This document shows positions 59,548 through 62,918 of a stretch of DNA of 64,000 nucleotides, in pieces. Below the pieces are notes generated by a model. The model made no database searches and was not told the origin of the DNA. It worked only from the letters and a program-made list of their open reading frames with translations. This stretch comes from Chlorokybus atmophyticus. Lineage: Eukaryota > Plantae > Mesostigma and Chlorokybus algae. The stretch covers positions 1,426,154 to 1,490,153 of the forward strand of contig RHPI01000810.1 in NCBI GenBank assembly GCA_009103225.1, written 5' to 3'. The translations under genes were made by a program, and so were the position numbers. Each line of letters opens with the position of its first letter. Within the stretch, counting starts at the first letter, position 1.

Positions 59548-62500
59548 TCATGATGCTGCGCAATCATCCCCTACTCCATACGCATCACAAGCACAACATC
59601 AGGGTCAACAAGCGCTCTGCCAAGCTGAGCATTGTGTTTTAGGCATGACACCATGTAGCAGTGATTGTGTGGCGCTCTTACCATACAAAAGGCTGAGGTC
59701 TTGAATGTAGCCACTTTGGTCGAAGTCTAGAAGGCCAATGCTCAAGCGCGGCCCGTACGTGAGCACATCCGAGCCGGTGAGGTTGAGTCGCACTTTATAA
59801 ACTGTTTGGCTAGATAAGCCATACATGACCGGAGGTGCTGCAGAGTTAAGAGTGAGAGGGGCTGCAGTTGAACTTTGCATGAATGTTGCGGCATTGAGGG
59901 GTACATTGCCACTTACACGAGTATATGTCCACGAGCGGGTGGTAAATGTTCGAGCCAATGCGCCTCGTGAATTGCTTTGTGGGAGGGTTGACCGAGATGT
60001 CAAACACGGCCAAGTACTGCGTAACGTCGGGAATTGGCTTGTTGTGTGGGATGGCGAGCTGAACGTACAAGAGCTTGTGCACTGCAGGTGGTTGCATATC
60101 AGTTGCAAATAAGAGCGCTTGTGTGTGAGGTAGACAAAGCGAAGCGAGAGTAGCAGGTGACAGACAGAGACGCAAGTGGCATATGACACAACAGTTCTGT
60201 CATACGCTATGTCACCTGGGTCGACTTGAAAAAACTTGATGCCGGCGGTTGGGAAGTTGGGCATGACAGTCATCGAATACAGGGATTGGATATAGGTGAG
60301 CGTGGAACGACTGCGCGATATGCTGGCCCTCTTCAACGTGTAAGTGAGGTATGCAGTCGTTCTGCTACCGGAGTGTAATGTGTAATAGGTGGTGTACTCT
60401 ATCCAGTACAGCTTCGGCGGTGAGACTGCAATACAATGAACACAAAGTCAACATAGCTCCAACGCACGTTACCTAGCGGGAATTCCCCCCCCCCCCCCNN
60501 NNNNNNNNNNNNNNNNNNNNNNNNNNNNNNNNNNNNNNNNNNNNNNNNNNNNNNNNNNNNNNNNNNNNNNNNNNNNNNNNNNNNNNNNNNNNNNNNNNNN
60601 NNNNNNNNNNNNNNNNNNNNNNNNNNNNNNNNNNCCGCCCCTTCTCCCCCTCCCTCTACATGTGCGTGCGTGCGTACGTGGCTGCGTGCGCGCTCGTGCG
60701 CACACACGCATACATAACAATAGCTGACCAACCTGACACGTCGATTTGTATGGAGTTGTAGATGCTCACGTCGGCGATGGTGGACTCCGGGATGCTGGTC
60801 TCATACACTTTCAGCGGGTTGTCTCTCCACGAAGCTGCGCTGTAAATCGCCGTCACGCGATTTGCAAATGCGTCCAATTGCGTAGAGTAGGTGAAAAAGA
60901 AATACAGCTTGTCCTCGGGCAGCTCTGCAAGTGAAAAGATTAGAGGACGTTGAGAGAGTAACCCAACGCAGTAAATGGTTCCGCAGATGCATGCTGTTCA
61001 CTGAGAGACCTGCCAACAACCAATGTCTTTACACACCAGACGTATCCACAGCAAAATTGTAAATAATGTTGTCGCCGAATTGGAAAGGCGGCACTTGAGC
61101 AGTCACTGCCCCGAGAGCATAGTTGGGTGGTTGCCGCACATAGTCCGCACGCGTAGACAGGATGTGAAGGATGTCCTCTGCCGGCGACGCATTCTCTATC
61201 CAATACACGGTATCTACGCAGTAGCCAGGGGTGAGCACGAAAAAGAGTGTGCACAAGCAAGTAAGTTCACATGCAGCTGTGCGCCACACCACGCAACAGC
61301 ACGTACCGCCAACCACAACCGACGTGAAGGACTTCTGATCAAAGGTCCTGAGGCTGTCCGGCGTGGAGTATAATGCACCACCAGAGTCTCCGACAGTGGT
61401 TGCATCAAAGAATTGGAGAAACCCCGTTCCACGTGAAGGTTCGTCGAAGCCCGAATAGTCGTACACCAGACGCTTCGCGCATTCTGTTTGCAAATAGGTG
61501 AGCATTGCATCGGGTGTTTAAGCAGAGTACTAGTGTGTGTGCGTGTGTGTGGGTGCATAAGTGCGTGCGTGCGTGCGTGGGTGCGTGCGTGCGTGGGTGG
61601 GTGCGTGGGCCCGTGGGCCCGTGGGTGCGTGGGTGCGTGGGTGCGTGTGCGTGTGCGTGCGTGTGTGTGTGTGTGTGTGTGTGTGTGTGTGTGTGTGTGT
61701 GTGTGTGTGTGTGTGTGTGTGTGTGTGNGAGAGAGAGAGAGAGAGAGAGAGAGAGAGAGAGAGAGAGAGAGAGAGAGAGAGAGAGAGAGAGAGAGAGAGA
61801 GAGAGAGAGAGAGAGAGAGAGAGAGAGAGAGAGAGAGAGAGAGAGAGAGAGAGAGAGAGAGAGAGAGAGAGAGAGAGAGAGAGAGAGAGAGAGAGAGAGA
61901 GAGAGAGAGAGAGAGAGAGAGAGAGAGAGAGAGAGAGAGAGAGAGAGAGAGAGAGAGAGAGAGAGAGAGAGAGAGAGAGAGAGAGAGAGAGAGAGAGAGA
62001 GAGAGAGAGAGAGAGAGAGAGAGAGAGAGAGAGAGAGAGAGAGAGAGAGAGAGAGAGAGAGAGAGAGAGAGAGAGAGAGAGAGAGAGAGAGAGAGAGAGA
62101 GAGAGAGAGAGAGAGAGAGAGAGAGAGAGAGAGAGAGAGAGAGAAGTGTGTAAAGCTTGTGGCCATTCCTTGCCTTTAATGGATTCGTCAGTGTCGACAA
62201 CCCTTGAGAAGTTGTAGATTCCGGCGCTGTTAGTGGTGGTCCGGTGCGTGCCAATGGAACTGATGTAGCTGCTGCTGCCCCCAGATGTGATGTTGGCAAA
62301 ACAGGTGAGCTGCACCTCAGCGTGCGCGAGGGGGACGTCGGCCCCGTGGTTGCGCTCACCGTCATTGCATTTGTCGCAGAACACTCGCCCTGTCACCGTC
62401 GCATACAGTGCCGGGTTGCGGGGAGGGCCGACGTCTGCAAGTGGGTTGGATCTCACGCATGCATGGCGACACAACCACATGCAAACTGAACACGAGCAAG

Positions 62501-62918
62501 GAGCACGGAGGCTAATAAGCAATGGAAACAGCCTTGTGCACAGCCTAAAGATCGACCAATTTTCTCGTCAGGGTGCCGTTCAGCGCAAGGTTAAGACCAT
62601 CAGCTGGCCAAGCATACCCCGCTTTCTGCCTTTACCGCTCCCAGCCCTAGCTAGCACAGAGGAAAGACTGACCAAGTCATGCCCGTCGTTGGCAAGAGAG
62701 TCAGGGCGCCAATCACTGCAAGATCAAGACCATGCCCAGACACATTCTCTTTACGCCTTTGCTACTCCCAGCCCTAGCTAGCACTCCACCAACGTGCGGT
62801 GCCAGGTGCCGCAGTTGCTCTTACCAACCACGGCGTTAGCGAGGGCCATGAGGACGAGGCCGAAGACCAAGAGTGGGAGCATCCTGCTAGATCGCCCGCC
62901 CATGCCGCCGCCGGACAT
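59548..62918 (-). CDS. Secreted ~484-aa protein: signal peptide + Pollen Ole e 1-like domain + six YWTD-like propeller repeats; exons 62918-62825, 62434-62174, 61483-61307, 61213-61037, 60924-60733, 60425-60216, 60081-59917, 59837-59682, 59570-59548
   Basis: Hydrophobic leader MLPLLVFGLVLMALANAVV. Ole e 1 pattern VTGRVFCDKC..PLAHAEVQLTC..TTNSAGIYNF..EC. Repeats TVYWIE, KLYFFF..AIYSA, KLYWIE..LKRASI, KLLYV, VMYGL. The spliced model sums to 1455 nt, open to TGA. Confidence 0.8.
60499..60634. other. Assembly gap (136 N) beside a poly-C run, inside intron 5 of the Ole e 1-propeller gene
   Basis: N run. Confidence 0.98.
61661..62144. repeat. Compound microsatellite: (GT)n then ~415 bp of (GA)n, in intron 2 of the Ole e 1-propeller gene
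   Basis: Pure GT run to 61727, one N, pure GA run 61729-62144. Confidence 0.97.

Follow-up and report, generated by a model that had tools for sequence, protein, structure and literature searches.

What does a minus-strand gene of the early-branching streptophyte alga Chlorokybus atmophyticus encode, if its first coding exons recall a plant cell-wall module and the remainder recalls the blades of a beta-propeller? The gene occupies positions 62918-59548 of a 64,000-nt stretch of contig RHPI01000810.1 (assembly GCA_009103225.1, positions 1,426,154 to 1,490,153), to which we refer throughout as the window. Reading the DNA letters alone, an earlier annotation, here called the original prediction, had proposed a secreted fusion of a Pollen Ole e 1 domain with a six-bladed propeller resembling the YWTD repeats of low-density lipoprotein (LDL) receptors. 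In plants, the Ole e 1/PAC domain is tied to wall networks, pollen function, and allergenicity. We find that the locus is a real, transcribed, and spliced C. atmophyticus gene, and we favor, at a probability of roughly 0.55, the reading that its product is a secreted protein of ≈484 residues in which an Ole e 1-like module is joined to a propeller and which acts as a binding protein of the wall or sheath. The domain classes themselves are known, but their combination and the sequence family of the propeller appear to be undescribed: our literature search returned no paper describing a propeller fused to an Ole e 1/PAC domain and none on this Chlorokybus family, and we found no database family with this architecture, in agreement with the novelty originally claimed for it.

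Gene structure and transcript support

The gene consists of nine exons and eight introns, and every intron is in phase 1, cutting after the first codon base. The exons sum to 1455 nt, which corresponds to 484 codons and a stop in a single open frame. Seven of the eight introns have a GT donor; the eighth, intron 2 (61484..62173, 690 nt), uses a GC donor in the near-consensus context AAAG/GCAAGG. The coordinates originally assigned to the gene were correct, as was every peptide string quoted from it, all of these lying on the minus strand at the ends or starts of exons. Transcript support comes from contigs of two public runs, X1 and X2, which we aligned to positions 59500-61500 of the window. 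Within this interval the contigs contain four minus-strand joints with GT..AG ends, corresponding to introns 5-8. Three of these (60733>60425, 60216>60081, and 59917>59837) come from run X1, and the fourth (59682>59570) comes from an X2 contig that is identical to the window. Because such spliced joints are present, the runs must be at least partly RNA, and transcription and splicing follow our model over the 3' two-thirds of the gene. The X1 contigs are 95-99% alike to the window and therefore derive from a sister strain or species.

Intron 5 (60426..60732) contains an assembly gap, a run of N at 60499-60634. One X1 contig (record 4) spans this gap through the joint 60733>60425, skipping 307 nt with GT..AG ends, and a paralogous protein, P0002, is collinear across the same junction (IDVS-V-SPSKLYW). 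We therefore conclude that no exon is hidden in the gap and that the frame is intact. At the 3' end, exon 9 (59548..59570) supplies the stop codon and, ahead of it, the seven C-terminal residues GDDCAAS, and an X2 contig (record 5) continues beyond it to 59500 as the 3' untranslated region. Two alternative splice choices were considered and rejected: reading exon 8 through to QSAC* is contradicted by the window-identical contig, which removes that intron, and a phase-0 donor after NFSR (AGG/GTTGTC) would break the frame.

The relatives used to check this model were found with a phmmer search in which exon 6 was the query and 1.84 billion representative proteins were the target. The search gave five matches, two of them Chlorokybus gene models. 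P0001 (eukprot jgi/Chlat1 Chrsp103S01050, 421 amino acids) is the public JGI model of the window gene and is 100% identical over exon 6. P0002 (Chrsp103S01063, 542 amino acids), encoded on the same scaffold as P0001, is 60% identical overall and 62% identical over exon 6, and its parts follow one another in the same order as those of the window gene. The E1-E2 junction of our model is the same in P0001, and the junctions of exon 4 agree with both proteins. At two other points P0001 departs from our model, and we rejected its version of both. Its join AHAE/RLVY omits exon-2 sequence that is 61% identical to P0002, together with a conserved cysteine, and its join IQID/LYWIE drops seven residues (VSVSPPK) and contradicts both the spliced contig and P0002. 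The P0002 model is itself without a signal peptide, and its first exon has probably been mis-called.

A predicted secretion signal and an incomplete Ole e 1-like module

Exon 1 (62825..62918) holds the start codon, with a second ATG at 62903, and ends in phase 1 at a GTAAGA donor. It encodes a segment with the layout of a signal peptide, namely a charged n-region, a 14-residue hydrophobic core, and the residues ANA ahead of the likely cleavage site. This N-terminal segment is the sole strongly hydrophobic 19-residue stretch of the protein (Kyte-Doolittle 2.43, in P0001). The C-terminal tail is not hydrophobic, and the protein has four N-glycosylation sequons. By hydrophobicity and sequence inspection, then, the protein has a putative signal peptide and, as the original prediction had also stated, neither another membrane segment nor a tail of the glycosylphosphatidylinositol (GPI) type, and it is likely to be secreted and soluble.

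Exon 2 (62174..62434) appears to encode the N-terminal part of an Ole e 1/PAC-like module of the prealbumin clan. It contains the motif TGRVFCDKCN, three cysteines, and two N-glycosylation sequons, and it matches the Pfam family PF01190 (Pollen_Ole_e_1) with an E value of 6e-6 and 27 bits, above the cut-off of 23. A secondary Pfam match, to SdrD_B (E 0.02), falls in the same structural clan. The exon is 61% identical to residues 16-95 of P0002; a word search with exon 2 alone gave no candidate. For P0002, the PF01190 match extends over profile positions 1-83 of 99 but reaches only 18.8 bits, under the cut-off. The N-terminal 170 residues of P0002 hold nine cysteines in an Ole e 1-like spacing, enough for three disulfides, and the language-model features of its N-domain lie nearest to the SdrD_B and CarboxypepD_reg clusters of the same clan (0.88-0.89). 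P0001 has no PF01190 match, most of exon 2 being skipped in that model.

The assignment of an Ole e 1 domain in the original prediction thus holds at the level of the Pfam cut-off, but the domain is incomplete in this copy, and several observations count against a working fusion protein. The PF01190 match of exon 2 is limited to profile positions 1-59 of 99, so that the N-terminal module covers ≈60% of the profile. The full Ole e 1/PAC domain has six conserved cysteines forming three disulfides, whereas the window copy has three cysteines in exon 2, and the loss of the cysteine-rich half would leave these three without their usual partners. The E2-E3 junction, which is the fusion point of this copy, hangs on the GC donor of intron 2, and P0001 splices otherwise; we provisionally accept the junction, which is favored by three features: it keeps the reading frame, the GC donor is a good one, and P0002 shares the Cys-Ala-Lys with which exon 3 begins. 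The rate of change adds a further point. Over positions 59917-60924 (exons 5-7), 20 differences from the X1 transcripts were listed for the window, 15 of them non-synonymous and 5 synonymous, which is close to the neutral ratio and indicates a gene that is either diversifying or under relaxed constraint. The motif of exon 2 also differs from PROSITE pattern PS00925, [EQT]-G-x-V-Y-C-D-[TNP]-C-R, at three fixed positions (F for Y, K for T, N, or P, and N for R). An exact fit to PS00925 is, however, confined to one clade of PAC domains (PMC7177597).

After the shared ...YNFS, P0002 continues for ≈73 more residues with five cysteines (residues 96-168), and tblastn found no counterpart of this segment anywhere in the window; overall, the window model has 5 cysteines and P0002 has 10. 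Intron 2 sits where P0002 has this extra coding sequence and is nearly all microsatellite, with (GA)n, (GT)n, and GTGC-rich repeats filling 61530-62145. A lone N stands at 61728, exactly between the (GT)n tract and a (GA)n array of ≈400 nt, and may represent a mis-closed scaffold gap. The cysteine-rich half of the module has either been lost from this copy with its exon or exons or been dropped by the assembly. Exon loss without a frameshift is possible because all introns are in phase 1.

One explanation of these features is that the window gene is a decaying paralog, which lost the cysteine-rich half as the intron filled with microsatellite and which is now transcribed, spliced, and evolving neutrally without a working N-domain, the functional members being P0002 and other copies. 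The segment peculiar to P0002, the difference in cysteine content, the microsatellite intron, the uniform intron phase, and the 15:5 ratio would all be accounted for in this way. Yet no stop codon interrupts the frame of 484 codons, the splice sites, including the near-consensus GC donor, are intact, and transcripts are present in two strains. The N between the microsatellites may mark a badly closed gap that hides an exon, and the 3:1 ratio, which is drawn from 20 sites and possibly from a paralog, also fits diversifying selection. We therefore regard decay as unlikely, although it has to be taken seriously, and continue to favor a functional secreted protein whose N-terminal module is incomplete in the assembly.

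Six exon-sized repeats and a candidate beta-propeller

The repeats occupy one exon each, from exon 3 to exon 8. They are 52-70 residues long and lack cysteine, apart from one that stands at the beginning of exon 3. Exon 3 (61307..61483), which is collinear with P0002 residues 169-226, opens with the conserved cysteine (ECAK) followed by the RLVY strand of repeat 1. Repeat 2 in exon 4 (61037..61213) reads TVYWIE ... ILSTRAD ... FAVDTS, and repeat 3 in exon 5 (60733..60924), of which the spliced X1 contig covers 60733-60913, reads KLYFFF ... AIYSAA ... IQIDVS. Exon 6 (60216..60425) carries repeat 4 (KLYWIE ... TLKRASIS ... FFQVDP), the most YWTD-like of the six. Repeat 5 lies in exon 7 (59917..60081; KLLYVQL ... 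YLAVFDIS ... LVDIYS), both junctions of which are spliced in contigs, and repeat 6 lies in exon 8 (59682..59837; PVMYGLS ... VYKVRLN ... LSLLY), which is joined to its neighbors in X1 and X2 contigs.

Within residues 3-9 of all six exons, a tyrosine directly follows a hydrophobic residue (RLVY, TVYW, KLYF, KLYW, LLYV, and VMYG). Such a pattern was obtained in none of 20,000 composition-keeping shuffles, a figure to be read with the caveat that the pattern was chosen post hoc from the data. Four of the six repeats end in hydrophobic-x-hydrophobic-Asp, the motif LYW[IL]E is present in repeats 2 and 4, and LYF is present in repeat 3. The language-model features of the repeat region lead to NHL, Ldl_recept_b, SGL, and DUF4394, at a level of 0.87-0.90.

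We modeled the structure of the repeats with AlphaFold, using alignments that contained just two family members. In the model of the repeat region alone, the chain is all-beta, and blades 4-6 show four strands per repeat and reach a predicted local distance difference test score (pLDDT) of 50-70. Searched against the PDB with Foldseek, this model gives weak matches that are almost all propellers. In a comparison with 48,161 chains by VIA-align, the best 50 matches are all propellers, with Z scores of 9.2-11.1 over 123-268 aligned residues; models without a true match usually peak at Z 7 to 8 by this yardstick. The matches include Tricorn, WD40 proteins, integrin alpha, and the YWTD proteins Sevenless and nidogen (Z 9.8-11.0 for the YWTD proteins). 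A search of the ESM Atlas returned propeller families only, with template modeling (TM) scores of 0.44-0.51 over 244-274 residues. These uniform structural neighbors, the periodic motif, the small cysteine-free repeats, and the lone terminal strand lead us to favor a propeller, and we consider it probable that the repeats form a six-bladed one. The low-confidence model itself is too weak for its blades to be counted.

Other results pull in the opposite direction. The full-length model of P0002 has a pLDDT of 32.0 and a predicted TM score (pTM) of 0.31, and the model of the repeat region reaches only 39.7 and 0.44, respectively. No Foldseek match attains an E value of 1e-3, TM scores there are 0.15-0.29, and the fold-search tool warns that low-confidence models may yield meaningless matches. 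At the level of sequence, Smith-Waterman z values between pairs of repeats are below 2 except for exons 6 and 8 (3.2), and among two-sequence blade profiles compared by hhalign, only repeats 2 and 4 align in register (E 0.005). Searches of each exon, P0001, and P0002 against the propeller families of Pfam, including LDL-receptor class B (PF00058), gave no match at E values up to 10. The NCBIfam search gave nothing, and PDB sequence searches with exon 2, the two-sequence profile, and a 12-blade profile gave nothing credible. Given the lack of a PF00058 match, the protein is not a member of the LDL-receptor class B family by that family's own test, despite the likeness of repeats 2 and 4 (LYWIE ... 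RA ... VD). What stands of the original prediction is, accordingly, the six exon-sized beta repeats, whereas their membership in the LDL-receptor class B family does not.

Could the repeats instead form some other all-beta fold, such as a beta-solenoid, a beta-roll, or a series of small beta modules, the propeller-like model being an artifact of a near-empty alignment? In the model of the repeat region, 261 of 377 residues have a pLDDT below 50 and the first 190 residues are essentially unmodeled, which, with the low TM scores and the failure to match any propeller family by sequence, is what such an artifact would produce. Against this, the top matches in three independent libraries are all propellers, over up to 274 residues and with Z scores well beyond the usual peak, and repeats of this size that lack cysteine are too small to fold alone. 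The order hhhD-loop-LY[WF] (h, hydrophobic) also recurs once per repeat, as it does in YWTD, NHL, and SGL blades, and the last repeat ends in a lone strand, as expected for ring closure. A different all-beta fold is, in our judgment, improbable. The six-bladed propeller that was originally put forward is weakly supported overall, by its structural neighbors and in the face of the low model confidence. The accompanying proposal that the terminal strand closes the ring is probably correct as well, since LSLLY would complete the first blade; it draws on the same low-confidence model and on the lone end strand.

The structural matches also raise the question of catalysis. Many of the weak matches are six- and seven-bladed lactonases and paraoxonase, and SGL is among the language-model leads. 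The Ole e 1-like module might thus serve merely to target an enzyme to the wall, one akin to the lactonases, paraoxonases, SGL proteins, or strictosidine synthases. However, none of these four families is matched by sequence at E values up to 10, non-enzymatic WD40 and YWTD propellers score equally well, and no conserved metal-binding residues can be assigned. Fast, near-neutral change also suits a binding surface better than an active site. We consider an enzymatic role very improbable and retain the binding protein as our working model.

Proposed architecture and role

In the model that we favor, a cleavable signal peptide would be followed by a disulfide-bearing beta sandwich of the Ole e 1/PAC, prealbumin-like type, which would be incomplete in the assembly. 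The remaining ≈360 residues would form an all-beta region of six exon-sized repeats folded as a six-bladed propeller. Strands 2-4 of a blade would then come from a single exon, which would also encode strand 1 of the following blade; blade 1 would be completed, and the ring closed, by the strand LSLLY at the C terminus. A cysteine ahead of repeat 1 and a cysteine in the C-terminal tail are kept in both paralogs (tail GDDCAAS in the window gene and GDDCVPPA in P0002), and we infer that these two might come to lie side by side and form a disulfide clasp of the ring. The mature protein would most likely be located in the wall or in the mucilage sheath and have two heads that serve binding or cross-linking rather than catalysis, with the Ole e 1-like module holding glycans and one face of the propeller binding a second ligand. 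Extracellular propellers of such a shape are mostly binding platforms. As for the partner module, binding of pectic polysaccharides and O-glycans is ascribed to the PAC/Ole e 1 domain (PMC7177597), and Chlorokybus cells possess an extensive sheath that contains arabinogalactan proteins (AGPs) (PMC10762512).

The N-terminal part of the protein resembles the Ole e 1/PAC proteins of plants, such as Ole e 1, LAT52, AtAGP31, and SAH7: it starts with a putative signal peptide, the motif G-x-V-[YF]-C-D-x-C is present near its N terminus, and a wall or extracellular site is to be expected here too. Unlike those proteins, in which the domain stands alone or is joined to Pro-rich or AGP regions (PMC7177597), the Chlorokybus protein continues with ≈360 residues of beta repeats. 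The prealbumin-like domains of bacteria (SdrD B, CarboxypepD_reg, and SpaA) share the structural clan of Ole e 1; exon 2 shows its weak match to SdrD_B, and the N-domain of P0002 lies nearest to such domains in its language-model features. The scores for these bacterial domains are, however, below any threshold. The CDxC disulfide pattern is missing from them, and in adhesins they usually form tandem arrays.

The repeats invite comparison with the YWTD/LDL-receptor class B propellers (PF00058), exemplified by nidogen (1npe), LRP6 (3s94), and Sevenless (9bfp), which are likewise extracellular and built of six units, the Chlorokybus protein being presumed extracellular from its signal peptide. 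The order within a unit is also YWTD-like: a hydrophobic-x-hydrophobic-Asp strand, a short loop, L-Y-W-x-[DE], and an I/L-x-R-A strand, most clearly in repeats 2 and 4. Closure of the ring by a terminal strand would be a further common feature, judging from the model. The differences are equally marked. The Chlorokybus repeats measure 52-70 residues instead of ≈43, repeats 1, 5, and 6 carry a degenerate form of the motif, there are no flanking EGF modules, and the gene devotes one exon to each repeat, with phase-1 introns. WD40, lactonase, and other propellers fit the model as well as the YWTD propellers do.

Distribution and implications

The three remaining phmmer matches are not relatives. 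Two (P0003 and P0005) were rejected as translated tandem-repeat junk, and the third (P0004) is a bacterial giant of DUF7507/DUF11 Ig repeats in which one beta-hairpin is alike by chance. Word searches with P0002 and with a profile of P0001 and P0002 found no third protein, and scanning JGI metagenomes and GTDB genomes for a pattern yielded pattern matches but no relative; the reach of these searches ends at ≈30% identity and at the limits of a length filter. Within the 64-kb window, tblastn found no second copy of any exon. This is a small, quickly changing family, and it is provisionally confined to Chlorokybus on the strength of these sequence searches.

If the favored reading is true, a streptophyte alga from one of the earliest branches already possessed the Ole e 1/PAC domain. 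The early streptophyte algae screened previously yielded no bona fide PAC domain, and Chlorokybus was outside that screen (PMC7177597). With one exon per blade, all in phase 1, the gene would also offer a clean example of how a repeat fold can gain or lose units in frame. That the protein changes fast and has tandem copies may point to recognition as its role in a little-known algal sheath. The practical weight of these points is modest, as the family is seemingly limited to one genus. One could go further and picture a genus-specific, tandemly expanded, and rapidly diversifying secreted family that combines an ancient glycan-binding PAC module, present at the base of the streptophytes, with a new propeller family of one blade per phase-1 exon and that serves recognition or adhesion in the sheath, for instance toward microbes or the alga's own AGP glycans. 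We offer this broader picture as speculation and think it doubtful as a whole.

Additional observations at the locus

Two further features of the locus were recorded. An X2 contig of 144 nt with a depth of ≈110 (record 6) agrees with the first part of exon 4 and the last part of exon 3, in the region 61184-61328. Between these exon parts it has 72 differing letters, compared with the 77 intron letters of the window, and its source could be a paralog or allele almost identical to the gene, present as unspliced RNA or as DNA. Upstream of the gene, ≈650 nt from its ATG, lies a perfect palindrome at 63571-63617, whose arms of 23 nt are separated by a single nucleotide. An AT-rich stretch comes after it, as does low-complexity sequence of the TA/CA type at 63835-63980. 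The palindrome may be the end of a transposon or of a miniature inverted-repeat transposable element (MITE), or else a hairpin.

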